Made by a program: the position numbers and the translations under genes
Assembly: GCA_038087875.1 (NCBI GenBank)
Contig: JAXLNO010004994.1
Coordinates: forward strand, 1-64,000
Length of the DNA stretch: 64,000 nt
DNA from: Malacoraja senta
Taxonomy: Eukaryota
Direction: 5' to 3'
Shown here: positions 12,594 to 48,175 of the stretch, in pieces
How the letters are laid out: each line of letters opens with the position of its first letter
Numbering within the stretch: the first letter of the stretch is position 1
Notes under the pieces: generated by a model
The model's database searches: none
What the model was told of the DNA's origin: nothing
The model's input: only the letters and a program-made list of their open reading frames with translations

Positions 12594-12869
12594 CTAAGAA
12601 ACAACAGAGGCATAAATTGTTTCAGAGTTCTCTGGAGCCCTAGTAGAGTGGGGTTTCCGATTGCCCTTTGGGCAGTTGCGATGAAAATTAACATCTGCGT
12701 AGAGAACAGTGTTGTGAGTCTCAGGGTGCATTAATCTCGACTTCCTTTGACATTTCACCACTGCATACGTGATTCCACCTTCATTGTTATCCAAATGGTC
12801 AGCTGCCCTGTTGTTTCCAATTTGCTGTAGATTTGCATCAACGTGGTTCCCTTCCAACACTGCCATTTC
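12594..12869 (-). CDS. Gene B terminal cytoplasmic exon with 2 ITIMs + 1 ITSM
   Basis: Acceptor ttttgttatattttag|GAA ATG (phase 0), open to TAG at 12594. ITYAVV (12756-12773), VLYADV (12690-12707) and TIYASV (12603-12620) match I/V-x-Y-x-x-V and T-x-Y-x-x-V. Confidence 0.88.
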   Translation of the reverse strand, partial: EMAVLEGNHVDANLQQIGNNRAADHLDNNEGGITYAVVKCQRKSRLMHPETHNTVLYADVNFHRNCPKGNRKPHSTRAPENSETIYASVVS

Positions 12870-13287: not shown

Positions 13288-13334
13288 CTGGATTTCATTG
13301 TTGTCTTCACCGTGTGATGTATTGCACTTGGATT
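13288..13334 (-). CDS. Candidate 47-nt juxtamembrane cytoplasmic exon of gene B (ESKCNTSHGEDNNEIQ)
   Basis: Acceptor atattttccag; phase 1->0 exactly bridges the TM exon and the ITIM exon. The donor reads CAG|GGAAAA (GG, not GT). Confidence 0.35.
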
Positions 13335-15465: not shown

Positions 15466-15554
15466 CCTTGGTTTTACGCTTTCGGTACCAAAAGAAGGCA
15501 ATGATGAGAATCAGGAGAAGCACAGTGACACCAGACGCAACTATGTAAGTGATC
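15466..15554 (-). CDS. Gene B transmembrane exon, uncharged (R-ITYIVASGVTVLLLILIIAFFWYRKRKTK)
   Basis: Acceptor cccttccctattctctgtccgacag|G, donor AAG G|GTGAGT; 89 nt, phase 2->1. Hydrophobic run followed by an RKRK stop-transfer signal. Phase matches the 49-nt stalk exon. Confidence 0.9.
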
Positions 15555-16770: not shown

Positions 16771-17651
16771 GATACAGCATGTAAACAGGACTTTCGGCCC
16801 ACCAAATCTGCGTCGACCAGTAATCACCATATATTAGATCTACCCTACACACTAGAGACAATTTACAGAAGCCAATTAACCTACAAACCTGCACGTCTTT
16901 GAAATGTGGGAGAAAACTGGAACACCTGGAGAACACCCACGTGGTCTCTGAGAGAAGGAACAAACTCCGAACAGACAGCAACAGGAGTCAGGATCGAACA
17001 TAAGTCTCTGGGGCAATAAGGCAGCAACTATATCGCTGTCCCACCATGCCACTGTTATTGGAGTTTTCATATCTTTCAGCTAGCACGCTGCCCTCCCTCA
17101 GTACTGCAGTGGTGTGGTATCTGAGGGATTTACCCAAATATTTGCAGCTATCCTTGAAACCACCACGTTGTGAGCGCGGTTCTACAACCCTGTTCCAACC
17201 TCGGTGGAGAGAACACCATGCCAAAGAGAAAACAATGCACTTCATTCCACAAATCTCACCCCAATGCCATTCACAACTCCATCTCCACATCCACCAACAT
17301 TGGTTTGGACATTGACTGTTCGTTTAGAGCTGTCTGCAATATGGAACATCTTCAGAAGGCAGCTCACCATGACCATCTCAAGGTCAGCAGTGTGACTTAA
17401 CGTGCCTACCACACAGGGTCACGTTCTAGGTGGAGACACTTCCTGCTGTTGGAATGCCTGACATTGAGAATTTGACCAACTCCGCAAGTTGGTGATTTAG
17501 CCCCTAATTCACTATTCCTATCAGTACCACACTAGAGCAGGTCACTGCAAGGCAAAGCAGCAGTAGTTGTGTTTGGCAACTATACTCATCTCACACCATG
17601 AGGTGAGGTTAGTGATGGAGAAGTCAAGGTGAATACCGCAGGGAACGCCCT

Positions 17652-19547
17652 ATAGAAACATAGAAACATGGAAACATAGAAACATAGAAAATAGGTGCAG
17701 GAGGAGGCCATTCGGCCCTATCATTGCACCGCCATTCATTGAGATCATGGCTGAACGCCACCACTCAATAACCCATGCCTGCCTTCTCCCCATATCCCTT
17801 GGTTCCACTAGCCCCTAGAGCTCTATCTAACTCTCTCTTAAATCCATCCAGTGATTTGGCCTCCACTGTCCTCTGTGCAGGAAATTCCACAAATTCACAA
17901 CTGACTGGGTGAAAACGTTTTTCTCACCTCAGTCTTAAATGGCCTCTGCTTTATTCTAAGACTGTGGCCCCCTGGTTCTGGACTCGCCCAACATTGGGAA
18001 CATTTTACCTGCATCTAGCTTGTCCAGTCTTTAAAAATGTTTCTATAAGATACCCCCTCATCCTTCTAAACTCCAGTGAATACAAGCCTAGTCTTTTCAA
18101 TCTTTCCTCATAAGACAGTCCCGCCATCCCAGGGATCAATCTCGTGAACCTACGCTGGACTGCCTCAATCACAAGGATGACCTTTCTCAAATTAGGAGAC
18201 CAAAACTGTACACAATACTCCAGATGTGGTCTTAACAGAGCCCTATACAACTGCAGAAGAACCACTCTACTCCTATACTGAAATCCTCTTGTTAGCTTTC
18301 TTCACTGCCTGCTGTACCTGGACGCCAACTTTCAGTGACCGGTGTACAAGGACACACAGGTCTCGCTGTTCCTCCCCCTTACCTAACCTAACCCCATTGA
18401 GATAATAATCTGCCCCCTTTTTTTTGCCACCAAAGTGGATAACCTCACATTTATCTATATTATACTGCATCTGCCACGCATCTGCCCACACACTCAACCT
18501 GTCCAGGTCACCCTGCAACCTCCTAACATCCTCTTCACAGTTCACACTGCCACCTAGCTTTGTGTCATCCGCAAACTTGCTAGTGTTGCTCCTAATTTCC
18601 TCTTCCAAATCATTAATATATATGGTAAACAGTTGCGGCCCCAACACCGAGGCTTGCGGCACTCCACTCGCCACTGCATGCCATTCTGAAAAGGACCCGT
18701 TCACTCCTGCGCTTTGATTCCTGTCTGCCAACCAATTTTCTATCCACGTCAACACCCTACCAGTACCATGTGCTCTAATTTTAGTCACCAGTCTCCCATG
18801 CGAGACCTATCAAAGGCTTTCTGAACGTCTAGTGACACTACATCCACTGGCTGCCCTTCATCCATTTTACTTGTCACATCCTCAAACCATTCCAGAAGAT
18901 TAGTCAAGCGTGATTTTCCTTTCATAAATCCATGCTGACTTGGACTAATCATTTTACTGCTATCCAAATGCCCCATTATTACCTCTTTAATGATTGACTC
19001 CAACATCTTTCCCACCACCAAAGCCAGGCTAACTGGTCGGTAATTCCCCGTTTTCCCGCTCGCTCCTTTCTTGAAAAGTGGGATAACATTAGCTATCATC
19101 CAATCCACAGGAACTGATCCTGAATCTATTGAACATTCGAAAATGATCACCAATGCATCCACTATTTCTAGAGCCACCTCCCTGAGGACCCTGGGATGCA
19201 GACCATCATGCCCAGGGGATTTATCATCCTTCAGTCCCATTAGCCCAGCCAATACTATTTCTCGCCTAATGATAATTTATTTCAGTTCCTCTACCCCCTT
19301 TGATCCTCTGTCCTCCAGTACTTCTGGGAGATTGTTTGTGTCTTCCTTAGTGACGCCAGATCCATAGTACCTGTTCAACTCCTCTGTCATTTCCTTGTTC
19401 CCCATAATAATTTCACCCATGTCTGGTTTCAAGGGACCCACATCTAATTTTGCTACTATTTTTCCCTTAACATTTTCTAAAGAAGCTTTTACTATCCTTA
19501 TTTATATTCCTGGCCAGCTTCCCCTCGTACTTCATCTTTTCAGCCCG
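17652..19547 (-). mobile_element. CR1/L3-type LINE, 5'-truncated, disrupted RT
   Basis: ORF pieces KSPGHDGLHPRVL, GVPQASVLGP..FADDTKL and RPHLEYCVQFWSP; (ctatgttt)n tail. It interrupts sequence that is contiguous at about 47300. Confidence 0.92.
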
Positions 19548-21559: not shown

Positions 21560-21608
21560 CTTGAAGAATAATTGGTTCTTTTCGAAGTTTCACAAGAATA
21601 TTCAAGTC
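21560..21608 (-). CDS. Gene B 49-nt stalk micro-exon (G-LEYSCETSKRTNYSS-R)
   Basis: Acceptor tttttatttccttgttccaacag, donor AG|GTAAAC; phase 1->2 links C2a to the TM exon. Same length and EYSCE motif in gene A. Confidence 0.85.
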
Positions 21609-22897
21609 CTGTTGGAACAAGGAAATAAAAATCAGTTTCACTGCTTTTCACTTGCAGTTGAACAAGAGAGCATGTTTGTCCGATATAAGGAGTTTATAGG
21701 TTTAATTGACAGGGCAATGTTTCTTCAGTGTAATTTGCAGCAAATGGGAGATGTTATCGTGATAAGCTGTAGTGCTGGTTCCAACTCAGGTTGCCTACAT
21801 TAGGGCGGCACAGTGGCCCACCAGTTGAGTTGCTGCCTTATAGCGCAGGAGACCCGAGTTCAATCCTGACTACGGGTACTGTCTGCACGGAGTGTTTATG
21901 TTCTCCATGTGACCGCGTGGGTTTTATTCAAGTGCTGCGGTTTTCTCCCATATTCTAAAGACGTGCAGGTTTTTAGATTAATTGCCTTCTGTAAATTGTC
22001 CCTAGTGAGTAGGATAGAATTAGTGCACAGGTGAAAGGCAGCTGCTTCCACGCTGGATTTCTAATTAAAATAAAGGAGGTGATTTCATGCGAGGGGTAGT
22101 GCCTGGGATGAAACATTACAGTTAGAAGGAGAGGCTGGATAGTCGGAGATTTTAATCCACACAGGAAAAGAAGGGGGAACCTATTACAGGTGTGTAAAGC
22201 TATGAGGAACATAGATAGGGTACTTTGTGGGAAATCAGCACAGCAGATGTGTGTAGAAGTGGAGAACATAGGGTTGGGTTAAGGAGTAGAATATTTGGAG
22301 GGTATCTGAGCAAGGAATATTTTTAAACCTAGATGGTGAAGACACATGAATTGTCAAGTCTGAGAAGAGTGTGGGTGAGGGGATGGTAAATGGGATTAGT
22401 ATCGATGGTGCTGAATGGTCAACATTAACACAGTGGACCAAAGCTGATATAGTCTAGGAGTTAACTGCGGCCACATTTACGGATAATTTCTGTTCCCTTC
22501 CCATTTTTGAGTGTCGGTCATGCGGAGATTATGGCAGGAAAGTGAAAGTGCTTGGAATGATGTAACTGCAAACCTAGTTTAAAACTGTGTAAACATAAGA
22601 CGAGGTTCTAGCCAGGAATCTGCCCTACACCAGCACTGGGGAATCTATTCCTGGAGCCCAGCAACCAAGTATTGACAAATGGGCCATAAGTCTATCATTT
22701 TAATATTGATGTTCATTAAATAACGTGCATGGATTTCAGGGTGTCGGGGATTATGTGGAAAAGACAGGAGAATGGGATGAAGAGGTGAAGATAGATCAGC
22801 CATGATTGAATGGTCTATTTCTGCTTCTATCACTTGTGATCATATAAACCGCCCCACCCCACTTCCCCTTCTTCTCCTCATTCCCTCCACTACTTAC

Positions 22898-23217
22898 CAG
22901 TGCCGTTGATTTTCACTAGAAAACTACAGGGCACGTCACTGCTGGAGATGGACACGTTGACTATTTCACTGGATTTTGTTCCATTAATATTGAGGCTGTG
23001 CAGTAATATTGATGGTGCTGGTGTTTGAAGGATTGACAATGTAGATCCAAGGCATTTTGGTCTGAGATCTTTGAATCCACAGATAGGGTCTTTTCATACC
23101 AACTGTAGCTAATGGGCGGTGATCCACTGACCGCCTCACAGGACACTGTCACTGAGCCCCCGAGACAGGAGTCATTGACTGGTGACAGGAATCCAAGCAC
23201 AGGAACAGACACGAGTT
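22898..23217 (-). pseudogene. Gene B C2-type Ig exon C2a with a 1-nt deletion
   Basis: Intact splice sites (cacag|AA CTC; ACT G|GTAAGT) but 320 nt vs 321 nt in gene A. Frameshift after YYCTAS gives a stop at 22961. Confidence 0.8.
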
Positions 23218-24410
23218 CTGTGGGTAAGGAGCAAACTGTCAGACACTGGGTGAACATCTGAAAATCAACCACTCGCCAATATCCACCATCTCTGTACCTT
23301 AGCCAGAGCCGCCAGGTTGGAATCTGACCCATCCATCTACATAGAATCATAGTCATACAGCATAGAAACAGGCCCTTCGGTCTAACTTGCCTGCGCTGAC
23401 CAACGCGCCCAATCTACACGAGTTCCACCTGCCCTTTCTTGGCCCTTAACCCACTAAACATATCATATTCATGTACCTGTCCAATATTTATTAAATGTTA
23501 CGATAGTACCTGCCATAACTACTTCTGTCGGCAGTTCGTTTCATGTGCCTACCAACCTTTGTATAAAAACGTTTTCCCAGGTTCCTGTTAAATCATTCCC
23601 CCCTCATATTAAAACCATGTCCTCCGGTTCTCGATTCCCCTACTCTGAGCAAAAGACTCTGTGTATTAACTCGATCTATTCCTCGCATGATTTTTTACCT
23701 GCCATGAGAACATCCCTCATCCTCCTGCGCACCAAGAAATAAAGTCATAATCTGCTCAATCCCTCCCTGTATGTCAGGCCCTCAAGCCATCACAACATTC
23801 TTGTAAGTTTTCTCTGCTCCTTCTCCTCACAATTTATCAGATTTGAACATCTCTGTGTCTCTCCATCCTCCCAGCTGCCAGAACTACCATGTCTGCCACT
23901 GTACCAATACACAGCAGCACCATCTATCTTTGTTTTATATTTCCAGCATCTGCAGTTAATCTTCTTTTAATCTGAAACTCTGCCACAATTCTACAATACC
24001 AACATTCAAACACTTCGTTAGTGCAACAGTATCATTATCAACAACTTTTTAATTTCCTTGTATAAAATTGTTGATAGTGATAATGTTGCACTAATGAGGT
24101 GTGAGAATGGCGGTATTGTAGAATTGTGTGTAGGGAGCGAATGGGAAAGTGGAATAACATAGAACCAGTGTGACCGGTGATCGCTAGTCGGTGTGGACTC
24201 GGTGGGCAGAAGGATCCATTTCCATGTTGCATTTGTAACCTACAACTAAATATCCCGGTGACATTTTTCTGTAACCTCTCCAAACCTTTCACATCTTTTG
24301 TTTTATAAAGCGGCGACCAGAACTGTGCACCAGACTCCCATATGTGACCCAACAAATGTTTTATGCAGATGCCAAAGTCGAGACATGAAGTCACTCACTG
24401 AGAAACCTAC

Positions 24411-24722
24411 CTTCAGATACTTGGAGATGTACTTTAAATGTTGGTTCGCCAGGTGTAATAATTCCACATCTGTACCATCCTGTATCTCCAGAGTGAAGAT
24501 CCTCCACAGTCACAGTAAATATTCCTCGTGCCGGGTTATCTGTGATTGTCACTCTACCGCTCTGTCCTTGTTTCCCATTTGTTTCCACTATATGTGTACA
24601 CTGGCGACTTGTCCCAGGGCACCAGTATTTTGTGTGTGAGCGGTACACTGCTGCATAGTGACAATCGATTGAGATCGCTCTTCCCACAACCCCTCGTACT
24701 TCGCTCTCTGCCCACAGTGCAC
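24411..24722 (-). CDS. Gene B V exon V3
   Basis: tttcag|GT GCA CTG TGG ... TCT GAA G|GTAGGT; 312 nt open; KYWCPG..C and DTGWYRC. Confidence 0.9.
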
Positions 24723-25973
24723 CTGAAACTGAAGGAAAATTCTTTCATAGATTGAAGAGCAACATTAGCCTTTCACAAACATATACATTATAGTATACAT
24801 CAATGTATACAGGGGCGTCCGCCCAGTGATTTTCTTAACTCTGTTGAATTCCACCTAGATTGCGATGAGAGACAGATACTGTACACCGTCCCTCACCATC
24901 TGCACGTCGTTCCAAAGCGCTTCCCAGCCAATGTGGGTGTGAATGGTGAATAATGATGCATTGAACACGGAGCCTGTTGCAATTGGAAGGTAATGTCTTG
25001 GGAGTCTTGGTGAGTTGCTGCAGTGCATCGTGCAGATGGTGCAAACTGCTGCTGCTCTGCATCAACCGGGTGTCTATCAAGTACGACTCTGGGTCATGAC
25101 AGAACAAACACAAGTGTTCGGCGAAATTGTAGCCTCGGCCAGTGCTTCTTAAACTGATGAATGGTTTACCCAAGGGTGAATGAAATTATTTTGGGGTGAA
25201 TGAGTTAATTCATGTGTTTTGCTCATGTGACAAAATAAATTATATATAAAATTATGCACAAGTGAAAATAAGATGATAATAACCAAAAAAAACATAAGAA
25301 TATTTGGTGGAGGGTGAATTAAATATTGTAATAAAGACTCAAGGGTGAATGGCACTGAAATAGTTTAAGAAACGCTGGCATTGTATAAGCTTGGTCTCTC
25401 TGATGTAAACCATTCACACTCTATTCTGGACTTCCAATCTGAACGTTTCCACACCTACTGGGAGTTCATTTCAAAATTCTCTTTGACAAAAGTAAGGGTT
25501 ATACTTGATGGAGTGACGGCCAAGTAGATTACAATTTAATTTAGTGATATTACTGGAGTTTAACACAAATTAACAGTTAAAATCATGAACATGATCATGA
25601 AATTGTACATCCTTGATTGTAAATGATGGCGGATCCAAACAGAATGCATTTGGTTGCTTTCAATGTCTCAAAGTGACTGTGAGACCTTAAGCGGCAGCCA
25701 AGCGGCATTTTTAAGGCAGAAGGCAGACATTTGATGGAGTGCACTCAACGCTTTGTGACAAGTGCATGTCTTTCTCTCCTTTGCTGAAATTGCTCAACAC
25801 CTCCATGGTGGAAGCTACGGGCAATTATTTGCCAGTCTCCCAAACAAACTCTCGCATTTTACACCATGAGCTCACGGTGGCTGCAATGATGCCGTCTGCA
25901 AATAACAAGAAATACATGAACATCACCACAAGGTGAATAGCAGCAGGTTCAGGGACACGAGAGGAACACTCAC

Positions 25974-26294
25974 CTGCATTGTTCATTTCTGTCACATAAC
26001 TGCACGTTCCTGCTCCTTTGAAGACTTTCACCTTGACTATTTCACTGGATTTTGTCCCACGATTATTTGCGGCTGTGCAGTAATATCGAAGGTGTTCACC
26101 TCTGAGGATTTCACAACTCAGATCCAGTTGATTGCCTTGCAAGATCGTTGAAACGCAATGCTCGTTCTTCTCAAACCATGTGTAATGGATGGGAAGGGAT
26201 CCACGGAGAGACTCACAGGACACTGACACTGAGCCTCCAAGACGTGAGGCATTTGCTGCTGACAGATAACTGAGCACAGGAGCAGACATGGGTT
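25974..26294 (-). CDS. Gene B C2-type Ig exon C2b (FCRL-like C2 motifs)
   Basis: cccacag|AA CCC ATG ... GCA G|GTGAGT; 321 nt open; PVL..GGSVSVSC..GSLPIHYTW..YYCTA. Confidence 0.9.
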
Positions 26295-27229
26295 CTGTGG
26301 GAATGGAGCAAATATTCAGTCACCTGTATGAATTGTTAAAAACCAAACACTTGCTAAATCTCAGCAGCACTTTATCTCAGCCCGAACCGTCCGGTTGATA
26401 CCTCACCGGCTCATCTACATCTCTGGGAGTGTGCGAAGCGCAGAAACCGAAGAAGGTTAGAGTTATTGAGAACCGAAAGATGCCCATCACAACAGCTCAT
26501 TAATGCCGACCAACATGTCTTTCTATGACATTTCCATATGTCCGCGTTTCTCATTTATCACTCGCAATGATCCCAATCTACGCAAATATCCAAAATTTAT
26601 TTTAAATGCTGCTATTCTAACTGCCTCAACAACTTCCCCTGGCAGCAGGTTCCATGTACATATTACCCAATGTGTGGAAAATGTTGTCCCTCAGAACATA
26701 TGTTGGGATGTTATGTTTCAGTTGTACATATGTTGTTGAGGTCGAACTTGTGCGAATTGTGTTCAGCTTCGGCCACTCATCTGTACAAAACATGCCATTA
26801 CGGTCAATGGCACCTTACTATTCCTCCCTCTTTAAATAGTTCCCATTACCTCTGTCCTCCACTTTTTGATTCCACACATCGTGGGAAAATGAACATGCTT
26901 CTCGTGATTTATTCATTTCTATAAGTTCCTCTCTCAATCATTTCCACACTAAGGAATGAAGTCTGAGTTTGTCCAATCGCTCCCTGCGTCAATCCCATCC
27001 TGTCCAGGCAACGTCGCCCAAAAACCTTTCTGCACGCTGTCCATCTCAACTTTTCTTGGAGCTGAGTGACTGAAGCTGAACACAATTCCCAAAGTGTGGA
27101 CTGAACATCTGCACGTCTGAAGCATATTATCTCAAATTATATTCTGAATGTTCTCACTGATGAAGACCAGCGTGCCAAAAACACAATTCAATGCCTTGTA
27201 ATTTAATCGCGAAAACTAATTACGATCGC

Positions 27230-28150
27230 TTTAAGAGAGACACAAAATGCTGGGGGAACTCAGCGGAGCCGGCAGCATCTCTCGAGAGAAGGAGTGGGTG
27301 AAGTTTCGGATCGAGACCCTTCTCCAGCCTGACAGTCATGTTCTGGGTGACAGAAGAGAAATGGAAGGATAAGATGTTAAAACAAGTGATCAAAGGTGAC
27401 AATGTTAAAGGGAAATGTAGATTGAATCATTGTCAGCTGAAGGGAAGGGGACAACGAGGCATACAATCAGTAAAATATTATCAGGTGAATCTAATTGGAG
27501 GTTTCGGATGGGGGCGGGATGGAAAGGAGTAAAGCAAGGGTTACTTGAAGTTAGAGATGTCAATATTCAAACCGCTGGGTTGTAAGCTGCCCAAGCGAAA
27601 TATGAGGCGCTGTTTTTCCAATTTGCCTTTGGCCTCACTCTGACACTGGAGGAGGTCCAGGACGGAAAGATCAGTTTGGGAATGGGAGGGGGAATAAAAG
27701 TGTTTAGCAATCGGGATGTAGCGTAGGCCGAGGCAGACTGAGCGGAGTTGTTCAGCGAAACGATCGCCGAGTCTGCGCTTGGTCTCCCATCTACTATATC
27801 CGCTTGTTCACATCTGGAACAGCGGATAGAGTAGATGAGGTTAGAGGAGATGCAAGCGACCCTCTGCCTCACCCGAAAAGACTGTTGAGGCCCATGGACG
27901 GAGTAAAGATGGGGATATATAGTGACTGGTGTTGCATCTCCTGCAGTTGTAGGGGAAGGTACCTGGGGACGAGGGGAGGGGGGGGGGAGGACGTGTTGAC
28001 CAGGGAGTTGCGGAGGGAACGCAAAAAGCGAAGGAGATGGAAAGATGTGACTAGTTGTGGCATCCCGTTGTAGGTGGCGCAAATGTCGGAGGAATATATG
28101 CTGTGTGCGACGGCTGATGGGGCGAAAGATGAGTTTATTCTGCTTACGAA
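27230..28150 (-). mobile_element. Penelope-like fragment (paralogous copy about 56815-57720)
   Basis: ISSNLIYSIRCSRC GIY-YIG-region translation and terminal motif; shared by genes A and B. Confidence 0.7.
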
Positions 28151-28711
28151 CGGGGAAATGTCCGGGAGCAGAGGCTGGCTGGCTGCCGGGCGGTGGGTGG
28201 ACAATGGCTGCTGGCAGTGGGGGCGCATTTACTGGGCAGAGGGAGAGAGAGAGAGTGCACGGGGTGGGGAGGGGGTGACTGATTCCTAAGGTGGGGGCGG
28301 GAAGCGGACTGGCCTGCCCCGGGAGGACTGAACGCAGTCTGTGGAGCTCTGGGGACTGATTCCCTGTTTATGATTCTCCGGGTATTCAGACGGCGAGCAA
28401 CACTTGTTTCTCACTGATCTGTCGGATCATTAGTTTGAGTCGGAATGCAAACCTCTGACAGGGTGATATTTCATACAATTCAGAGGCAGGGAAATGTGTT
28501 GAGTGTCTTGAAGTGGGTGGCCGCTCAATGGCACAGAACCCGCACTGGGTGAGAGCAAACATGAGTGGGGTTTCCCGACCCTCGCCCGCTCCCCGCAGGC
28601 CTCTGCACTGCTGCGGAGCCTCGAGATATCGGTGCTGCCCTGACCCTTCCCGGAGAAAACATGGATCAGGCTTTTCAGTGGAGACATTAAGTCAATCGCT
28701 GCGAATCGTAC

Positions 28712-29026
28712 CGTCAGATACTTGGAGATATACGTTAAACATTGAATGGTCGGCAGGTGCTGTGATTCCACAGCTGTACCATCCGGTATCTCCAGAGTGA
28801 AGATCTTCCACAGTCATAGTAAATATTCTTAGTGCCGGTATATCGGTGATTGACACCCTTCCACTCCGTCCGTGTTGCCCATTTGTTTCCACCATATCTG
28901 TACATTGGCGACTCTGCCCACGGCACCAGTATTTAGCCTGTGAGCGGTACTCTGCTGCATAGTGACAATCGATTGTGATGGCTCTTCCCACAACTCCTGT
29001 TAAATTCCTCTCTCCCCACACTGCAG
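28712..29026 (-). CDS. Gene B V exon V4
   Basis: ctttcag|CT GCA GTG TGG ... TCT GAC G|GTACGA; 315 nt open; NLT sequon. Confidence 0.9.
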
Positions 29027-30159
29027 CTGAAAGGGAGGGGAAAAACTTTCAGATGCAGAGCAAATGAACTGTTTAATGGAAATATATACATTTTGAAGAT
29101 TACATGAAAAACATAATCGTTCCATGATGTGTCATTTTGCTTCACGGCCAATGTCTCGGGTCTGAAGTGCAGGCAGTGCTGTTATTGTACAAGTTGTGTC
29201 TGTGTTCTGTCCCCGGGTCAGTACAATTAGGGTTCACTTCCCACTCCAGATCCCTGCGCAGAAACTGGGCTGGGATCGCAGTGCGGTACTGAGGGAGCGC
29301 GGCAGTGTTGCAGGAGCTGCCTTTCAACAATCCCAGGCGGTGCCCGGCCTCTCACCCTACAGAAATACCTCACTTTGCTATTTCAGTGTCGGCGCTGCCA
29401 GCATTCATCTCTCAACCGACACTGGGCCGGACCCGTGTTTAGAAATTCACCGCAGCCACTGTGTTTACAACGCCCTGACTGAGGACAGAGTACGGACGGG
29501 TTACAATAAAGCGGGTCCCTTGCTGGAGAACGCTACTAGCGTGAAAACACACAACGCCAGATTCACTGTATCTCGGTACTCGTGACAATAAACTAAACTG
29601 AATTGTGAGCCCAATGTCCCGCTGCTCATCTGGGACAGGTTTTATTCCCAATGACCCCGGCTCGCCCTGGACAATTCAGCACGGCTGGGCCGCGGATTGG
29701 AGAGATGATGGAGAGAGAGTTGGGGTGGGTGTATAGAGCGAGGACAGTGGTTCAGTCTCAGACTCCGGGGAATTGTTGGGTTTGCGACAGAGTTGAGCCG
29801 GACAAATGCTGGGAATGTTTGAACTGACACAATGAGTCCACAATCCTGACTTCCACCTCCTTGGTAAACACATTTTAAAAGTGTAGAATTAACTTCCTGA
29901 TGACGTTGGAACCTCTCGCCTTCGGTCCAGGTGTCTTGCAGTATCTGCTTCAAATTCATTCGCTATTTTAAGCCTTTCATTTATCATCAGGATGCAATTC
30001 GACCATGTGTCAACAGTGGTTAAACTACGAACATTGTGTAGATATTCAAGTGTGATTTCAGATCCATCACCACAATGCACTGAGTTCCATTTCCCCCTTT
30101 ACATGTCTACACATACTTAACCATCTCTGCTGTGGAAAACGAATTTACGATCCCTTTAA

Positions 30160-31060
30160 GATAGACACAAAATTCTGGAGTAACGCAACGGAGCAGGCAG
30201 CATCTCTCGAAAGAAGGAATGAGTGACGTTTCGTGTCGAGACCCATCTTCAGCCTGAGAATCATGGGACAGGGAGACAGAAGAAAATGGAAAGGTAAGGT
30301 GTGAAAACAAGTGATCAAAGGTGAAAAGAAAATGGACAATGGATCATTGTGAGCTGAAGGGAAGGTGGCAACGAGGCATACAATAAGTAAAATAAAATCA
30401 GTTTGACTGTGCAACTAACTGGAGAGCTAGGATGGTGGCGGGATGGGGACAGGAGTAAAGCAAGGGTTCCTTGAAGTTAGAGAAGTCAATATTCAAACCG
30501 ATGGGTTGTAAGTTTCCCAGGTGCTTTTCCTCCTATTTACGTTGGATAGTGGAGGAGGTCCAGGACAGAAAGTTGAGTTTGGGGATGGGAGGGGGAATTA
30601 AAGTGTTTAGCAATCGGGAAGTAGCGTCGGCCGAAGCAGACTGAGCGGAGTTATTCAGCGAAACGATCGACGAGTCTGCGCTTGGTCTAGCCGATATATA
30701 GTAGTTCACACCTGGAACAGCGGATGTAGTAGGTGAGCTTGGAGGAGATGCTGGTCAATCCTCACCCGAAAAGATTGTTGGAGACCTTGGACGGAGTAGA
30801 GGTAGGAGGTATCGAGACAGGTGATCTATCTCCTGCAGTTGTCGGGGACGGTACTTGGGGAGGGGATGGGGTTTTTTTTGGGGTGGGGGGGGATGGACGT
30901 TGACCAGGGAGTTACGGAAGGAACGGTCTCTTCGGAAAGCAGAAAGCGGTGGAGATGGAAAGATGTGTCTAGTAGTGGGATCCCGTTGGAGGTGGCGAAA
31001 ATGTTGGAGGATTATGTGTTGTGTGCGACGGCTGATGGGGTGATAGATGAGTTTATTCTG
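30160..31060 (-). mobile_element. Penelope-like fragment (paralogous copy about 59735-60620)
   Basis: Same motif set as the other Penelope pieces; it begins where homology to the leader intron stops. Confidence 0.65.
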
Positions 31061-31328
31061 CTTAACACCGGGGAAATGTCCGGGTGGAGAGGTTGGCTGA
31101 CTGCCGGGCGGTGGGTGGACAGTGGCTGGTGGGGATGGGGGCGCATTGACGGGGCAGAGGGAGAGAGAGAGAGCGCGGGGTTTGGGAGGGAATGACTGGT
31201 CCCTGAGGTGGGGGCGGGAAGCGGGATGGCCTACCCCGGGAGGACTGATCGCAGTCTATTGAGCTATTGAGTCTATTGAACATACAGTTCAGAGGAAGGG
31301 AAATGTGCTGAGCATTCCACTTGAAGTG

Positions 31329-32796
31329 AAAAGTGAAGTGAAAGAGAAGTTAAATTCCACTTTTCAAAAAAGGAGCGAGAGAGAAAACGGGGAATTACAG
31401 ACCAGTTAGCCTGACTTCGGTGGTGGGAAAGATGCTGGTGTCAATTATTAAAGTGGTAATAATGGGGCATTTGGATAGCAGTAAAAGGATTAGTCCAAGT
31501 CAGCATGGATTTATGAAAGGAAAATCATGCTTGACTAATCTTCTGGATTTTTTTGAGGATGTGACAAGTAAAATGGATGAAGGGGTGCCAGTTGATGTAG
31601 TGTATCTAGACTTTCAGAAAGCCTTTGATAAGGACCCGCCCGGGAGACTGGTGACTACAATTAGAGCGCATGGTATTGGGGGTAGGGTGTTGACGTGGAT
31701 AGAAGATTGGTTGGCAGACAGGAAGTAAAGAGTAGGAGTGAACGGGTCCTTTTCAGTATGGCAGGCAGTGACGAATGGAGTGCCGCAAGGCTCGGTGTTG
31801 GGGCCGCAACTGTTTACCATATATATTAATGATTTGGAAGAGGGAATTAGGAGCAACACTAGCAAGTTTGCGGATGACACAAAGCTGGATGGCAGTGTGA
31901 ACTATGAAGAGGATGTTAGCAGGTTGCAGGGTGACCAGGACAGGTTGAGTGAGTGGGCAGATGCGTGGCAGTATAATATAGATAAATGTGAGGTTATCCA
32001 CTTTGGTGGCAAAAACAAGGGGGCAGATTATTATCACAACGGGTTAGGTTAGGTAAGGGGGAGGCGCAGCGAGACCTGGGTGTCCTTGTACACCGGTCAC
32101 TGAAAGTTGGCTTGCAGGTACAGCAGGCAGTGAAGAAAGCTAATGGAATGTTGGCCTTCATAACAAGAGAATTTCAGTATAGGAGTACAGAGGTTCTTCT
32201 GCAGTTGTATAGGGCTCTGGAAAGACCACATCTGGAGTATTGCGTACAGTTTTGGTCTCCTAATTTGTGGACGGACATCCTTGTGATTGAGGCAGTGCAG
32301 CATAGGTTCACGAGATTGATCCCTGGGATGGCGGGACTGTCTTATGAGGAAAGATTGAAAAGACTAGGCTTGTATTCACTGGAGTTTAGAAGGATGAGGG
32401 GCGATCTTATAGAAACACATAACATTATAAAAGGACTGGACAAGCTAGATGCAGGAAAAATGTTCCCAATGTTGGGCGAGTCCAGAACCAGGGGCCACAG
32501 TCTTAGAATAAAGGGGAGGCCATTTAAGACTGAGGTGAGAAAAAACGTTTTCACCCAGAGAGTTGTGAATTTGTGGCATTCCCTGCCACAGAGGACAGTG
32601 GAGGCAAAATCACTGGATGGATTTAAGAGAGAGTCAGATAGAGCTCCAGGGTCTAGTGGAATCAAGGGATATGGGGAGAAGGCAGGCACAGGTTATTGAT
32701 TGGGGACGATCAGCCATGATCGCAATGAATGGCGGTGCAGGCTCGAAAGGCCGAATGGCCTCCTCCTGCACCTATTTTCTATGTTTCTATGTTTCT
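31329..32796 (+). mobile_element. CR1 LINE 3' part in the intron downstream of V5
   Basis: RT-region ORFs and (ttctatgt)n tail; aagtg repeated at both ends relative to the empty site in the V4 intron (cttgaagtgggtggcc). The same insertion is at about 61000-62365. Confidence 0.92.
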
Positions 32797-32996
32797 AAGT
32801 GGGTGGCCGCTCAGTGGGGCAGAGCCCACTCAGGGTGAGAGCAAAATGAGTGCGATTTCCCGACCCCCGCCCGCTCCCCGCATGTCTCTGCACTGCTGCG
32901 GAGCCTCGGGATATCGGTGCTGCCCTGACCCTTCCCGGAGAAAACATAGATCAGGCTTTTCACTGGAGACGACAAGTCAATCGCTGAGAAACGTAC

Positions 32997-33311
32997 CGTC
33001 AGATACTTGGAGTTCTACGTTTAAGATTGAACGGCCGTTAGATGTTGTAATTCCTCACCTGTACCATCCTGTATCTCCAGAGAGAAGATCCTCCACAGTC
33101 AAAGTAAATATTCCTCGTGCCGGGTTATCTGTGATTGACATTCTTCCACTCCCTCCGTGTAGCACATTTGTTCCCACCATATCTGTACATTGGCGATTCT
33201 GCACACGGCACCAGTATTTTGTGTGTGAGCGGTTCTCTGCTTCATAGTGACAATAGATTGTGATCGCTCTTCCCACAATTCCTCTTACATACGTCTCTCC
33301 CCACACTGCAG
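32997..33311 (-). pseudogene. Gene B V exon V5 with a nonsense codon
   Basis: 315 nt with splice sites; the F-strand Cys codon is TGA (33055-33057, WYR*). Confidence 0.88.
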
Positions 33312-34299
33312 CTGATATGGAGGGGAGAAACTTTCAGATGGAGAACAAATGAACTGTTTAATGGAAATAGATACATTTTGAAGAAAACATGCAAGAAAAC
33401 TTAAATCGTTCCATGATGTGTCATATTGCTTCACGGCCAATGTCTCCGGTGTGAAGTGCAGGCAGTGCTGTAATTGTACCTGTTGTGTCAGTGTTCTGTC
33501 CCCTGGTCAGTACAATTAGGGTTCACTTCCTACTCCAGATCCCTGAGCAGAAACTGGGCTGGGATCGCAGTGCAGTACTGAGGGAGCGCGGCAGTGTTGC
33601 AGGAGCTGCCTTTCAACAATCCCAGGCGGTGCCCGGCCTCTCACCCTGCAGAAATACCTCACTTTGCTATTTCATTGGCGGTGCCGCCGGCTACGCTGCC
33701 AAAATTCATCTCTCAACCGACACTGGGCCGGACCCGTGTTTAGGCATTCACCGCCGCCACTGCTTTTACATAGCCCTGACTGAGAACAGAGGACGGACGG
33801 ATTACAATAAAGCGGGTAAAGAAATAAGAGACAATAGGTGTAGGAGTAGGCCATTCGGCCCTTCGAGCCAGCACCGACATTCACTATGATCATGGCTGAT
33901 CATCCACAATCAGTACCCCGTTCCTACCTTCTCACCATATCCCATAGCGCCGCTATCTTTTAGAGCTCCATCTAACTCTCTCGCTCTGACGTTTCGGGTC
34001 GAGACCCATGCTCAGACCAGAAACGTTACCCATTCCTTCTCTCCAGGGATGCAGCCTGTCTCGCTGAGTTAATCCAGCATTTTTTTGTCAATCTTTAATT
34101 CTCTTTTATTTCCTTATCTCAACAGAACCTAAATCTATTCGTGAGTCGTTAACATCAGTTGGGTTCACTTCAAATACAAATGTAACACCCGATAACAATC
34201 ATCAGGAAACCACTGCGCCCAGTTACTCTTGCTCAATTTTGGATTGGTCTTGCTTTTCAATATGAGAGGTGGAGACACAAGGAACTGTAGATACATACA

Positions 34300-35140
34300 T
34301 AGATAAATAGATACATAGATACATAGGCAATAGGTGCAGGAGTAGGCCATTCAGCCCTTCGAGCCAGCACCGCCATTCAATGTGTTCATGGCTGATCATC
34401 CACAATCAGTACCCCGTTCCTGCCTTTCCCCATACCCCTTGATTCCGCTAGCCCAAAGCGCTCTATCTAACTCTCTTTTGAATGCATCCAGTGAATCGGC
34501 CTCCACTGCCTTCTGAGGCAGATAATTCCACAGATTCACAACTCTCTGGGTGAAAACGTTTTTCCTCATGTCCGTTGTAAATTGCCTATCCATTATTCTT
34601 AATATCGGGAAAATGTTTCCTGCCTCTCGCGTGTCCAATCCCTTAATAATCTTATATTTTTCAATAAGATCCCATCTCATCCTTCTAAATTCCAGAGTAT
34701 ACAAGCGCAGCCGCACCATTCAATCAACAGATGACAGTCCCGCCATCCCGGGAATTAACCTTGTTGCACTCCCTCAACATACACTGCACTCCCTCGATAG
34801 CAAGAAGGTCCTTCCTCAAATTTGGAGATCAAAACTGCAAACAATAATCCAGGTGTGGTCTCACTGGGGCCATGTACAACTGCAGAAGGACCTCTTTGCT
34901 CCTGTACTCAACTCCTCTTGTTATTAAGGTCAACATGCCACTAGCTTTCTTCACTGCCTGCTGTACCTGCATGCTTACTTTCAGTGAGTGGTGAACAAGG
35001 ACCCCCAGATCTCTTTGTACTTCCCCTTTTCCCAACCTGACAACATTCAGATAATAATCTGCCTTCCTGATTTTGCTACTAAAGTGGATAAACTCACATT
35101 TATCCACATTAAACTTCATCTGCCATGCATCTGCCCACTC
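34300..35140 (-). mobile_element. CR1 LINE fragment
   Basis: QMKFNVDKC..RPHLDYCLQF and YTLEFRRMR translations. Confidence 0.85.
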
Positions 35141-35479
35141 ACCCAACCACTCACCCACTCACCACTCGCCCACTCACCACCCACCTCCAGGTCCCTTACC
35201 GGAGAGCGTTACTAGCGTGAACACGCACACCGCCAGATTCGGGGACAATTACTTCACAGCTGTTGTCAGGCATCTGAATCATCCTACCACATCCAGAGAG
35301 CAGTGCAGAACTATCTATCTCTTTGATGACCCTCGGACTACCCTTGATCGGATTTTGCTGGATTCGCCTTACACTAAACGTAATTTCCTTTTCATGTATC
35401 TATGCACTGTAAGAGGATCGATTGTAATCCTGTATTGTCTTTCTGCTGGAGACGTCAAGTCATTCGCTGCGAAACATAC

Positions 35480-35794
35480 CGTCAGATACTTCGAGTAAAA
35501 CGTTAAATATTGGATGGTCGGCTGATGTTGTAATTCCACAGCTGTACCATCCTGTATCTTCAGAGTGAAGATCCTCCACAGTCACAGTAAATATTCCTCG
35601 TGCCAGGTTATCTGTGATTGACACTCTTCCACTCCGTCCGTGTTGCCCATTTGTTTCCACTAAAACTCTACACGGTCGACTCCTCCCACGGCACCAGTAT
35701 TTTGTGTGTGAGCGGTACTCTGCTGCATAGTGACAATCGATTGTGATCTCTCTTCCCACAACTCCTTTTACTTCCCACTTTGCCCACACTGCAC
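35480..35794 (-). CDS. Gene B first V exon V6
   Basis: Same splice sites as V1; 315 nt open; 6 nt different from V1. Confidence 0.92.
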
Positions 35795-37364
35795 CTGAAA
35801 CTGAGCGGAGAAACTTTCAGATGGAGAGCAAATTAACTGTTTAATGGTAATTGATACATTTTGAAGATTACATGAAAGAAAACGTAAAACGTTCCATAAT
35901 GTGTCATATTGCTTCACGACCAATGTCTCCGGTCTGAAGTGCAGACAGTGCTGTTATTGTACCAGTTGTGTCAATGTTCTGTCCGCGGGTCAGTGCAATT
36001 TGGGTTCACTTCCCACTCCAGATCCCTGAGCAGAAACTGGGCTGGGATCGCAGTGCGGTTCTGAGGGAGCGCGTCAGTTTTGCGGGAGCTGCCTTCCAAC
36101 AATCCTAGGCGGTGCCCGGCCTCTCACCCTAAAGAAAGACCCCACTTTGCTATTTAATTGGCGGTGCCGCCGGCTGCGCTGCCAACATTCATCTCTCAAC
36201 CGACACTGGGCCGGACCCGTGTTTTTTAAAAATATTATCAAATAATTTATTTAATTATTGAAAATAATATTTACGATACAATAAAACAAAACAGAACCCA
36301 CCACCATAATACGAGACAAACAAATAAACGAAATAAACTACTATACAACTATGTTACAATACTTGTCAAGGATGTATTCAACCCCAGGCGGTGCCCAGAA
36401 GTCCCGGAAACATTCATCTCTCAATCGACACTGGGCCGGACCCGTGTTTAGACATTCACCGCCGCCACTGCCTTTACAAAGCCCTGACTGAGGACACAGA
36501 GGACGGACGAGTTACAATAAAGCGGGTCCATTACCGGAGAGCGTTACTAGCGTGAAAACGCACACCGCCAGATTCGGGGACAGTTCCTTCGCAGTTGTAC
36601 TCAGACATCGGAATCATCCTACCACAACCAGAGAGCAGTGCTGAACTATCTACCTCTTTGGTGACCCTCGGACTACCCTTGATCGGACTTCGCTGGCTTT
36701 ACCTTACACTAAACTTTATTTCCCTTTCATGTATCTATGCACTGTAAGAGGATCGATTATAATCATGTATCTGGCTGGTTAGCACGCAAGAAAAAGCTTT
36801 TCACTGTACCTCGGTACACGTGACAATAAACTGAACTTGCATTTCAGCGCGACTGGGTTGCGGATTGGAAAGAGGATGGAGAGAGAGTTGGGGGTAGGTG
36901 GATAGAGCGAGGACAGTGGTTCAGTCTCAGACTCCGGGGAATTGTTCGGTTTGCGACAGAGTTCAGTTGGAAAATGCAGGGAATATTTGAATGACACAAT
37001 GAGTCCACAATCCCGACTCCCCCCTCAGTTGTAAACACATTTTAAAAGTGTAGAATCAACTTCCTGGTGATGCTGCAACCTCTGTCCTTCGGTCCAGGTA
37101 TCTTGGAGTATCGTCCCCAAATTCATTTGCTATTTTATGCCTATAAAATATCATCAGGATGCAATTAGACCGTGTCAACAGTGGTTAAAGTACGAACACA
37201 GTCTAGATATTCAAATGTGATTTCAGATCCATCACCACAATGCACTGAGTTGCACCTCCCCCATTACATGTCTACACATACTTAACTATCTCTGCTGTGA
37301 AAAGCGTGCATGGGACGCCAAATAACATTGATCATTGGAATATCAGGATCTGGCTTTCACTCAC

Positions 37365-37401
37365 CCGGCAGCGAGGAGATGAGAAGAATGGGAATCCACA
37401 T
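37365..37401 (-). CDS. Gene B signal-peptide exon (MWIPILLISSLP-G)
   Basis: ATG at 37401; donor G|GTGAGT, phase 1. Confidence 0.88.
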
Positions 37402-39695: not shown

Positions 39696-42600
39696 ATACA
39701 TAGCTACATAGATACATAGAAAATATGTGCAGGAGTAGGCCATTCGGCCCTTCGAGCCTGCACCGCCATTCAATATGATCATGGCTGATCATCCAACTCA
39801 GTATCCCGTACCTGCCTTCTCTCCATACCCCCTGATCCCCTTAACCACAAGGGCCACATCTAACTCCCTCTTAAATATAGCCAATGAACTGGCCTCAACT
39901 ACCCTCTGTGGCAGAGAGTTCCAGAGATTCACCACTCTCTGTGTAAAAAAGTGTTTCCTCATCTCGGTCTTAAAGGATTTCCCCCTTATCCTTAAGCTGT
40001 GACCCCTTGTCCTGGACTTCCCCAACATCGGGAACAATTTTCCTGCATCTAGCCTGTCCAACCCCATAAGAATTTTGTACGTTTCTATGAGATCCCCTCT
40101 CAATCTCCTAAATTCTAGCGAATATAAGCCGTCTATCCAGTCTTTCTTCATATGAAAGTCCTGACATCCCAGGAATCAGTCTGGTGAACCTTCTCTGCAC
40201 TCCCTCTATGGCTATAATGTCCTTCCTCAGATTTGGAGACCAAAACTGTACGCAATACTCCAGGTGTGGTCTCACTAAGACCCTGTACAACTGCAGTAGA
40301 ACCTCCCTGCTCCTATACTCAAATACTCTTGCTATGAAGGCCAACATACCATTCGCTTTCTTCACTGCCTGCTGCACCTGCATGCCTACTTTCAATGACT
40401 GGTGTACCATGACACCCAGGTCTCGCTGCATCTCCCCATTTCCTAATCGGCCACCATTTAGATAATAGTCTGCCTTCCGGTTTTTGCCACCAAAGTGGAT
40501 AACCTCACATTTATCCACATTATACTGCATCTGCCAAACATTTGCCCACTCACCCAGCCTATCCAAGTCACCTTGCAGTCTCCTAGCATCCTCCTCACAT
40601 CTAACACTGCCCCCCAGCTTAGTGTCATCCGCAAACTTGGAGATGTTGCTTTCAATTCCCTCGTCCAGATCATTAATATAAATTGTAAATAGCTGGGGTC
40701 CCAGCACTGAGCCTTGCGGTACCCCACTAGTCACTGCCTGCCATTGTGAAAAGGACCCGTTTACTCCTACTCTTTGCTTCCTGTTTGCCAGCCAGTTCTC
40801 TATCCACATCAGTACTGAACCCCCAATACCGTGTGATTTAAGTTTGTATCCTAATCTCTTATGTGGTACCTTGTCGAAAGCCTTCTGAAAGTCCAGTTAC
40901 AACACATCCGCTGGTTCTCCCCTATCCACTCTACTAGTTACATCCTCGAAAAATTCTATAAGATTCGTCAGACACGATTTACCTTTCGTAAATCCATGCT
41001 GACTTTGTCCAATGATTTCACCACTTTCCAAATGTGCTGCTATCCCATCTTTAATAACAGACTCTAGCAGTTTCCCCACTACCGATGTTACACTAAATGG
41101 TCTGTAATTCCCCGTTTTCTCTCTCCCTCCCTTCTTAAAAAGTGGGGTTACGTTTGCTACCCTCCAATACTCAGGAACTACTCCAGAATCTAAAGAGTTT
41201 TGAAATATTATCACTAATGCATCCACTATTTCTGGAGCTACTTCCTTAAGTACTCTGGGATGCAGCCTATCTGGCCCTGGTGATTTATCGGCCTTTAATC
41301 CATTCAATTTACCTAACACCACTTCCTGACTAACCTGGATTTCACTCAGTTCCTCCATCTCCTTTGACCCGCGGCCCCCTGCTATTTCCGGCACATTATT
41401 TATGTCTTAGTGAAGACGGAACCAAAGTAGTTATTCAATTGGTCCGCCATATCCTTGTTCCCCATGATCAATTCATCTGTTTCTGACTGCAAGGGACCTA
41501 CATTTGTTTTAACTAATCTCTTTCTCTTCACATATCTATAAAAACCTTTGCAGTCAGTTTTTATGTTCCCTGCCAGTTTCCTTTCATAATCTATTTTCCG
41601 TTTCCTAATTAAGCCCTTTGTCCTCCTCTGCTGGTCTCTGAATTTCTCCCAGTCCTCTGGTATGCTGCTTTTTCTGGCTAATTTGTACGCATCATCTTTT
41701 GCTTTGATACTATCCCTGATTTCCCTTGTTATCCACGGATGCACTACCTTCCCTGATTTATTCTTTTGCCAAACTGGGATGAACAATTTTTGTAGTTCAT
41801 CCATGCAGTCTTTAAATGCCTTCCATTGCATATCCACCGTCAACCCTTTTAGAACTAATTGCCAGTCAATCTTGGCCAATTCATGTCTCATACCCTCAAA
41901 GTTACCTTTCTTTAAGTTCAGAACCGTTGTTTCTGAATTAACAATGTCACTCTCCATCCTAATGAAGAACTCAACCATATTATGGTCACTCTTGCCCAAG
42001 GGGGCATGCACAACAAGACTGCTAACTAACCCTTCCTCATTACTCAATACCGAGTCTAGAATAGCCTGCTCTCTCGTTGGTGCCTCTACATGTTGGTTTA
42101 GATAACTATCCCGCATACATTCCAAGAAATCCTCTTCCTCAGCACCCCTGCCAATTTGATTCACCCAATCTATATGTAGATTGAAGTCACCCATTATAAC
42201 TGTTTTGCCTTTGTTGCACGCATTTCTAATTTCCTGTTTGATGCCATCCCCAACTTCACTACTACTGCTAGGTGGCCTGTACACAACACCCACCAGCCTT
42301 TTCTGCCCTCAGTGTTTCGCAGCTCTACCCATACCGATTCCACATCCTCCAAGCTAATGTCCTTCCTTTCCACTGCGTTACTCTCCTCTCTAACCAGCAA
42401 CGCTACCCCACCTCCTTTTCCTTTCTCTCTATCCCTCCTGAATATTGAATATCCCTGGATGTTCAGCTCCCAGCCTTGGTCACCCTGGAGCCATGTCTCC
42501 GTGATCCCAACTATATCATAATCATTAATTGCTATCTGCACGTTCAACTCATCCACCTTATTACGAATGCTCCTTGCATTAAGACACAAAGCCTTCAGGC

Positions 42601-42963: not shown

Positions 42964-43054
42964 CTTAGAGCTTCTTGTGAACACCGCGGTTGAGATACTC
43001 CAGATCGCAAGCAGGAGAAAGAACAGCCAGCGCCCCACTTTCCATGAGATGTAA
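42964..43054 (-). CDS. Gene A transmembrane exon with basic residues (S-YISWKVGRWLFFLLLAIWSISTAVFTRSSK)
   Basis: Acceptor tctcttgccctttgcccag|T, donor AAG|GTAAGT; 91 nt, phase 2->0, matching the stalk exon. Arg at 43030-43032 and Lys at 43039-43041. Confidence 0.8.
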
Positions 43055-48126: not shown

Positions 48127-48175
48127 CTTGCAGAGTTATTGGATGTTATCGAATTTTCACAAGAATATTCATGAC
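48127..48175 (-). CDS. Gene A stalk micro-exon, downstream copy (G-HEYSCENSITSNNSA-S)
   Basis: tctttgttccaacag|GT ... AG|GTAAAC; 49 nt, phase 1->2. Confidence 0.8.

Follow-up and report, generated by a model that had tools for sequence, protein, structure and literature searches.

Three questions are raised by this locus of Malacoraja senta: whether six immunoglobulin (Ig) exons of two alternating domain types belong to one gene, which receptor family they represent, and whether the gene can work by leaving out its damaged exons. The studied stretch extends from the start codon ATG at 37401 to the final base of the stalk exon at 21560, within the window (the whole 64-kb stretch of DNA that was analyzed). 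With a probability of roughly three in four, as judged from sequence comparison, it represents the half of a single MDIR3-type gene that encodes the ectodomain, and this gene is a decaying copy or null allele in a birth-and-death cluster and does not depend on the bypass of dead exons.

The gene (gene A) is located on the minus strand and contained 11 coding exons spanning 24.8 kb, in the order leader, V1, V2, V3, C2a, V4, C2b, stalk, transmembrane (TM), cyt1, and cyt2. The coding part of the leader exon (37365..37401; MWIPILLISSLP plus one base) ends in phase 1 at a GTGAGT donor, and this leader is also present in the MDIR3 and MDIR5 cDNA proteins and in Amblyraja models. The V1 exon (35480..35800) is intact, and its length of 321 nt falls to 315 nt when splicing uses the proximal acceptor at 35794, its tandem acceptor being tcag/TTTCAG/GT; it shared 92% identity with Amblyraja V1. 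Intact exons were also found for V3 (28712..29026; 315 nt), C2a (25974..26294; 321 nt), and V4 (24411..24728; 318 nt, reduced to 312 nt by use of the proximal acceptor at 24722). V2 (32997..33311; 315 nt) is a dead exon with a TGA at 33057-33055 and intact splice sites, and C2b (22898..23217; 320 nt) is frameshifted, one base short near 22991. The sequence-only reading had placed the six Ig exons in the order V-V-V-C2-V-C2 and described them as phase 1-1 throughout and 312-321 nt when intact; both statements were borne out on the minus strand, C2b being 320 nt as assembled and 321 nt in the paralogue and in four Amblyraja copies. The possibility that C2a continues into a hydrophobic ORF of the intron (25825-26289) was ruled out, as the C2 exon of relatives stops at the GTGAGT donor, here at 25974.

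The remaining exons encode the membrane anchor and the tail. The 49-nt stalk exon (21560..21608; GLEYSCETSKRTNYSS) is entered in phase 1 and left in phase 2; it fixes the reading frame in which the membrane anchor is translated. The TM exon (15466..15554; ITYIVASGVTVLLLILIIAFFWYRKRKTK; phase 2 in, phase 1 out) was matched by MDIR3 in tblastn (88% identity, E 3e-13), showed 93-97% identity to MDIR3 and Leucoraja, and carries zero charged residues in its membrane span. It is followed by cyt1 (13288..13334; 47 nt), whose donor is GG and not GT, and by the last exon, cyt2 (12597..12869; tblastn with MDIR3: 78% identity, E 2e-44), which encodes the cytoplasmic tail and the stop codon. The tail motifs in this exon include two with the ITIM pattern (ITYAVV and VLYADV) and one with the ITSM pattern (TIYASV).

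Pfam and sequence matches to solved structures confirmed the earlier assignment of the V exons to the CD300/pIgR type and of the C2 exons to an FCRL-like type. The Pfam V-set model matched V1, V3, and V4 at E 2e-13 to 4e-13 (3.6e-13, 2.3e-13, and 3.3e-13, respectively) and the truncated V2 at 5e-7, and both C2 exons were matched by Ig_3, Ig_2, and Ig_C17orf99. By sequence, the solved structures nearest to V1 were pIgR (E 2e-55) and CD300f/CLM-1 (E 8e-20), and those nearest to C2a were FCRL5 (E 1e-35), followed by FCRL4 and domains d6-d7 of CD22. Each of the four V positions falls into an orthology group of its own, and Amblyraja has the same four groups; V4, which forms a distinct clade, shared 89% identity with the V domain that stands third in MDIR3, and 92% with Amblyraja/Leucoraja.

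The locus nevertheless fits none of these three families as a whole. CD300a and CD300f signal through ITIMs, and the V domains here are of the subtype that CD300 and pIgR share, with their best structural matches in these proteins; however, CD300 has a single V domain without C2, whereas six Ig exons, including two C2, were found here. pIgR has 2 V-type domains in teleosts and 4-5 in tetrapods, and binds J-chain-containing polymeric Ig. Its five-domain form is built of V-type domains without interleaved C2, and its tail carries transcytosis signals rather than ITIMs; in gene A, C2 exons are interleaved and the ITIM/ITSM tail matches that of MDIR3. FCRLs resemble the locus in their C2 domains (FCRL5, as above), in their ITIM-bearing tails, and in a domain number that varies from phase 1-1 exons, but they consist of FcR-type C2/I-set domains without pIgR/CD300-type V domains, whereas four of the six Ig exons here are V-set exons of that type.

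On the other hand, the interleaved V/C2 architecture, which the sequence-only reading had regarded as unusual, is the defining feature of the MDIRs (modular domain immune-type receptors) found in skates. This family has been known from cDNA since 2006 (Cannon et al. 2006, Immunogenetics 58:362, as cited in PMC3031540). A protein search recovered the cDNA-derived MDIR3, MDIR5, and MDIR2 of Rostroraja eglanteria (clearnose skate), and the conceptual product of gene A without V2 was colinear with MDIR3 (79.8% identity over 694 aligned residues), whose layout is V-V-C2-V-C2-stalk-TM-ITIM tail. The two share the leader, the V-V-C2a-V-C2b order, the C2-to-V linker, a Cys-containing stalk, an uncharged TM, and two ITIMs plus one ITSM; the linker, a stretch of ~20 residues within C2a that ends in TEMNNA, is identical to that of MDIR3 and MDIR5. 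MDIRs combine CD300/pIgR-like and FcR-like Ig modules in variable number, with layouts of V-C, V-C-V-C, V-V-C-V-C, and V-C-V-C-V-C among relatives, and gene A adds four V and two C2 exons to this range. Its ITIM tail and uncharged TM are those of the MDIR2/MDIR3 class, although the tail may not be reached because of the GG donor of cyt1. MDIR genes are clustered, and three genes or gene parts were found in the window, with tandem genes at both Amblyraja loci (L001 and L002). The genomic copy differs from MDIR3, which comes from another skate species, in a third N-terminal V exon (six Ig exons), in three lesions, and in the type of its N-terminal domains, as both N-terminal V of MDIR3 are V1-like and the copy here would have V1 plus V2 or V3. 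Gene A is thus an ordinary, probably decaying member of the known MDIR family.

Alternatively, the six exons could be spread over a number of short genes that have promoters and leaders of their own, such as an L-V1(-V2) gene and a distinct V3-C2a-V4-C2b-TM gene. An Amblyraja MDIR5-type gene does begin with a V3-type exon after its own diverged leader (L002: 52.7k, 59.8k), and the intron upstream of V3 (29672-30141) is homologous to the intron directly downstream of the leader exon. However, this homology of the leader region does not reach the leader exon itself but ends ~60 nt away from it, where a repeat has been inserted. When the leader region was used as query, sensitive blastn found no leader exon between 22k and 35k of the window or between V1 and C2b of Amblyraja locus L001, although the same search detected leaders of only 72% identity in L002, and regex and blastn together located leader-type exons of the 64-kb window only at 37401 and 2056. 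One candidate internal leader, at 25295, was the sole ATG followed by a hydrophobic run; it was ruled out because the number of T in the run on which it sits varies among copies, with changes of frame. The six exons of the Amblyraja orthologue fall inside one RefSeq model, and in MDIR3, as derived from cDNA, the domains V, V, C2, V, and C2 follow one another within a single polypeptide. A division into several genes is therefore highly improbable, and the earlier treatment of the block as a single gene holds.

The Amblyraja radiata orthologue (model P0183, CM021389.1, 33.40-33.44 Mb) corresponds to gene A exon for exon from V1 through cyt2, in the same order and with similar spacing, and shows 83% protein identity to the conceptual product. 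Its RefSeq name, "polymeric immunoglobulin receptor-like", is automatic. In contrast to gene A, every exon of the orthologue is intact and the cyt1 donor is GT; the RefSeq model takes V1 and V2 but not V3, and the intact V2 of Amblyraja is used in models P0183 and P0006. As assembled, gene A contained three lesions. In V2, the second canonical Cys codon is replaced (TGT>TGA at 33057-33055). In C2b, a base is missing near 22991, just past the second Cys, which shifts the frame and leads to a stop 11 codons later; gene B and four Amblyraja copies each have the extra base. The cyt1 donor, CAG/GTAA in all four Amblyraja copies, has changed from GT to GG, and read-through would end the tail after three codons, before the ITIMs. 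Two of the six Ig exons (V2 and C2b) are thus dead, and 7/10 of the remaining coding exons are fully intact. This count and a dS to Amblyraja of only ~0.05 suggest either that decay is recent or that the lesions are allelic or errors. The dN/dS ratios against Amblyraja and gene B, a comparison that left out the cyt2 pair, ranged from 0.5 to 1.9 (5.5 for V2/V2', on 18 changes), and at ~310 nt per exon, with few sites, such ratios cannot distinguish neutral decay from the fast evolution that is usual for such receptors.

All three lesions rest on a single assembly, and they could be assembly or haplotype artefacts, in which case most individuals would carry an intact five- or six-domain inhibitory receptor of the MDIR3 type. 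Indels of a single base, such as the C2b change, are the errors that long reads produce most often, and the exons other than the lesioned ones are intact. Public DNA contigs carried the gene B letter at 36 of the 40 listed variants, and are thus paralogue contigs of at least 95% likeness. In run X2, an insertion at 22991 that would seem to restore the frame is likewise a gene B letter, and the site is spanned by no A-type contig in either run. However, the V2 and cyt1 lesions are substitutions (TGT>TGA and GT>GG), a type that is rare among assembly errors, and the paralogue has its own independent set of lesions, as real decay in the cluster would produce. An artefactual origin is therefore considered unlikely, and gene A is most probably, on present sequence evidence, a decaying copy or null allele.

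The paralogue, gene B, is the upstream neighbor of gene A. Self-alignment revealed a 12-kb segmental duplication (89-96% DNA identity) through which the two genes share a V2-V3-C2a-V4-C2b block. The membrane anchor of gene B is of the MDIR5 type (TM exon, 43056-42964; last exon, 39323-39276), and MDIR5 of Rostroraja eglanteria matches this gene, its V3-C2a-V4-C2b block being shared with gene A by duplication. MDIR5 and gene B differ from gene A in their TM exon (SWKVGRW...) and in a last exon that encodes 16 residues and lacks tyrosine motifs. The damage in gene B comprises a stop, a frameshift, and two changes that hit canonical Ig residues; its V2 copy is interrupted by an independent TAG.

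Whether a damaged gene of this kind could still work depends on exon skipping. The sequence-only reading had proposed that any subset of the Ig exons can be skipped in frame, so that one gene gives many domain combinations and tolerates dead exons. The in-frame property stands, as all Ig exons are phase 1-1, but it is not special: phase 1-1 symmetry is a general rule for Ig-domain exons, and skippability is therefore true of most IgSF receptors. Whole-exon skipping found indirect support in RefSeq models of Amblyraja and Rhinoraja, which are computed and come from a cluster with at least one chimeric model. Amblyraja model P0183 passes over a V3 exon (L001:21091-21402) that is intact and has good splice sites. 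In Rhinoraja, isoform X1 is distinguished from X2 by exactly one C2 exon and by 6-nt acceptor shifts, both tandem acceptors being used. These models would accord with a working gene in which regulated whole-exon skipping yields many domain combinations and routinely bypasses the dead V2 and C2b, for example as V1-V3-C2a-V4 receptors; intact splice sites beside independent stops in V2 of both window paralogues are also what long-standing non-use would produce. However, the dead V2 and C2b retain consensus splice sites, so that default splicing would include them together with their premature stops. The GG donor of cyt1 lies outside the Ig exons, and exon skipping therefore cannot rescue the copy. 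The tolerance of dead exons is weakened accordingly, the more so as the paralogue decays similarly, and routine bypass in a working gene A is improbable. A broader form seems quite doubtful, namely that MDIR genes regulate Ig-exon skipping, that V2 and V3 serve as tip domains which are optional or alternate with each other, that both 6-nt tandem acceptors are used, that V2 is permanently bypassed in both paralogues here, and that gene A encodes a receptor of five domains or of the V1-V3-C2a-V4 set, whose tail may be truncated and ITIM-less so that it acts as a decoy. If regulated skipping did occur, one locus would give a set of receptors differing in domain number.

By analogy with the MDIR family, the product of an intact MDIR3-type gene would be a leukocyte type I membrane glycoprotein, with pIgR/CD300-type V domains alternating with FCRL-type C2 domains in its ectodomain. 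The two ITIMs and the single ITSM of its tail would be expected to recruit SH2 phosphatases and thereby dampen activation. Symmetric phase 1-1 Ig exons allow domains of this family to be gained, lost, and skipped, and the locus gives the exon-level anatomy, in symmetric Ig exons of 312-321 nt, of the cDNAs described as "modular" in 2006. The ectodomain block has been copied between an ITIM-tailed and a short-tailed gene, and the arrangement of gene A beside gene B is, as far as their predicted tails indicate, the layout of paired receptors. The coexistence of pIgR/CD300-type V and FCRL-type C2 domains within one cartilaginous-fish gene bears on literature statements that sharks have no pIgR or FcRL relatives (PMC4016189). 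The copy is damaged and nothing in it is new in kind; its value lies in annotation and in one data point on the birth-and-death evolution of paired immune receptors.

The V/C2 design of gene A is that of the MDIRs (modular domain immune-type receptors), a skate family known from cDNA since 2006, and is not new. All MDIR-related genes in the window are located on the minus strand. In gene A, scanning of all six frames and tblastn searches with proteins of related receptors placed four V exons (near 35.6k, 33.2k, 28.9k, and 24.6k) and two C2 exons (near 26.1k and 23.2k); a leader exon precedes them and a short stalk exon follows. The coding part of the leader (37401-37365, 37 nt, ATG at 37401) ends in phase 1 and is followed by V1 (35800 or 35794 to 35480, 321 or 315 nt), V2 (33311-32997, 315 nt), V3 (29026-28712, 315 nt), C2a (26294-25974, 321 nt), V4 (24728 or 24722 to 24411, 318 or 312 nt), C2b (23217-22898, 320 nt), and the stalk (21608-21560, 49 nt, phase 1 to 2). 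V1 and V4 carry a tandem acceptor (cag/TTTCAG/GT), and both versions, with or without 'VS', occur among related proteins. The V-V-V-C2-V-C2 order proposed by the sequence-only reading was thus confirmed, and the leader ATG and the stalk end coincide exactly with the limits it had set. V1, V3, and V4 matched the Pfam V-set family (E about 3e-13), as did the cut V2 (E 5e-7), and both C2 exons matched Ig_3, Ig_2, and Ig_C17orf99. Among solved structures, V1 was closest to pIgR (2e-55) and CD300f/CLM-1 (8e-20), and C2a to FCRL5 (1e-35), followed by FCRL4 and CD22. Therefore, the labels CD300/pIgR-type V and FCRL-like C2 were correct.

The proteins nearest to the window genes came from skates and rays only, and synonymous divergence between the window and Amblyraja radiata was about 0.05, which marks this vertebrate DNA as that of a skate. 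A library-wide HMMER search with V3 as the query matched multi-domain RefSeq models in Rhinoraja, Leucoraja, Amblyraja, Hemitrygon, Hypanus, Mobula, Pristis, and several sharks, which are named 'polymeric immunoglobulin receptor-like', 'CMRF35-like', or 'Fc receptor-like 5'. Mapping of window-derived V and C2 profiles onto these models revealed the alternating designs V-C, V-C-V-C, V-V-C-V-C, and V-C-V-C-V-C. A second protein search recovered the cDNA-derived MDIR 2, 3, and 5 of Rostroraja eglanteria; MDIR3 (701 aa) consists of a leader, V, V, C2, V, C2, stalk, TM, and ITIM tail. With MDIR3 as a probe, the remaining exons of gene A were located beyond the block 21560-37401, namely TM (15554-15466, 89 nt, phase 2 to 1; 88% identical to MDIR3), cyt1 (13334-13288, 47 nt, phase 1 to 0), and the last exon, cyt2 (12869-12597), which ends with a stop codon, is 78% identical to MDIR3 (E 2e-44), and carries ITYAVV, VLYADV, and TIYASV. 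A conceptual gene A product of 696 aa, with V2 omitted, an X at the C2b break, and the cyt1 junction assumed, was colinear with MDIR3 (79.8% identity across 694 positions) and 83% identical to P0183, the RefSeq model of the orthologous Amblyraja locus. The original MDIR study reportedly described MDIRs with one to six Ig ectodomains in four subfamilies, with ITIMs in MDIR2 and MDIR3.

Leader exons of the MDIR family were found in the window only at 37401 and 2056. Sensitive blastn with the leader region gave no match between 22k and 35k of the window, and the same search picked up 72%-identical diverged leaders in another Amblyraja locus. The sole ATG-plus-hydrophobic candidate for an internal leader, at 25295, was rejected because its frame was not conserved; the linker of about 20 residues between a C2 and the next V (…VFKGAGTCSYVTEMNNA) was rejected as a hidden leader because it belongs to the C2 exon. 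In the Amblyraja orthologue, ten exons follow the leader in an order identical to that of gene A, within one RefSeq gene and with no internal leader. The block therefore holds as one gene, as had been claimed. A tree of V exons gave four groups (V1, V2, V3, and V4), each with a window and an Amblyraja exon. Together with the same exon order, these shared groups imply that the six-exon arrangement predates the split between the two skates.

Relative to its paralogue and four Amblyraja copies, gene A as assembled carries three lesions: the second Cys of V2 is changed from TGT to TGA, C2b lacks 1 nt directly after its second Cys, and the cyt1 donor is changed from GT to GG. Read-through at this donor meets a stop after three codons, ahead of the ITIMs, and the lesion cannot be repaired by exon skipping. 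From these differences, gene A is read as a recently decaying copy or a null allele. That the lesions are an assembly artefact is a live alternative; in public DNA contigs at gene A, nearly all 'variants' were gene B letters from paralogue contigs, and no contig of the gene A type spanned the C2b indel.

The sequence-only reading had also claimed that any subset of the Ig exons could be skipped in frame. All six are indeed phase 1-1. Amblyraja P0183 includes V1, V2, C2a, V4, and C2b but not V3; the V3 exon is open there and has a consensus acceptor and donor. The only differences between two isoforms from Rhinoraja, X1 (977 aa) and X2 (870 aa), are three: X2 lacks 109 residues, corresponding to one C2 exon plus a 2-residue acceptor shift, and has an additional 2-residue acceptor difference at another junction. 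The MDIR3 cDNA has five domains. In-frame use of Ig-exon subsets in the MDIR family is therefore plausible, with its support coming from computed models. Phase 1-1 symmetry is the general rule for Ig-domain exons, so skippability is not special to gene A. Overall, the sequence-only interpretation receives partial support, for one gene and for plausible skipping; the design is known, and this copy looks broken. Caution is due for RefSeq models of this Amblyraja cluster: P0179, at a further MDIR locus (gene 10001-84969, CM021389.1 33.65-33.74 Mb), extends over 75 kb, skips C2b, TM, and tail exons that belong to at least two other MDIR genes, and is probably chimeric.

Elsewhere in the window, a third gene (C; leader ATG 2056, intact V1 at 456-133) extends past the window start, and a frameshifted V4-like pseudo-exon (6043-5739) adjoins an MDIR5-type last exon (5516-5469). 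LINE reverse-transcriptase fragments (17650-19520, 31350-32800, 34300-35150, and 39700-41580) lie in both orientations, in introns and between genes; the V2-V3 intron is longer than in Amblyraja mostly because of those at 30135-32800.

The block from V2 to C2b (22042-34414) has a second copy at 51232-64000 (89-96% identity), and is common to gene A and gene B, an upstream MDIR5-type paralogue (39276-64000, minus strand). Gene B carries its own lesion set: V2' has a TAG stop, C2a' (about 55.76k) lacks 1 nt (GAGAAGAAC to GAGAAAAC), canonical Ig residues of V4' are changed (W>R and D>V), and the stalk exon of 49 nt occurs twice; V3' and C2b' (52343-52020) are intact. Through a 2.58-kb tandem duplication (46951-52120, 99.6% identity), the 3' part of C2b' and the stalk (about 50.7k and 48.1k) are each present twice; if both stalk exons were included, the TM exon would be read in a different frame. 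The V3 pair (28712-29026 and 58295-58609) is 89% identical, and its duplicated flanking introns about 96-97%; the exon has changed faster than its flanks, either by diversifying change or because other V exons acted as donors in conversion, and a dN/dS of 0.68 is compatible with both. The TM exon of gene B (43056-42964) is MDIR5-type and 90% identical to MDIR5, and the last exon lies at 39323-39276. Read one base out of frame, this TM exon (43008-43056) gives VTSHGKWGAGC.FSCL and then a stop; the RefSeq models P0005 (Leucoraja) and P0006 (Amblyraja), both without the stalk exon, end in this sequence; skipping of the 49-nt stalk would therefore switch the membrane form to a short secreted-type form. 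Genes A and B are thus neighbors with a common ectodomain and different tails, an ITIM tail in A and a short tail in B. This arrangement is the layout of paired receptors, which is common among the KIR, LILR, CD300, and SIRP families.
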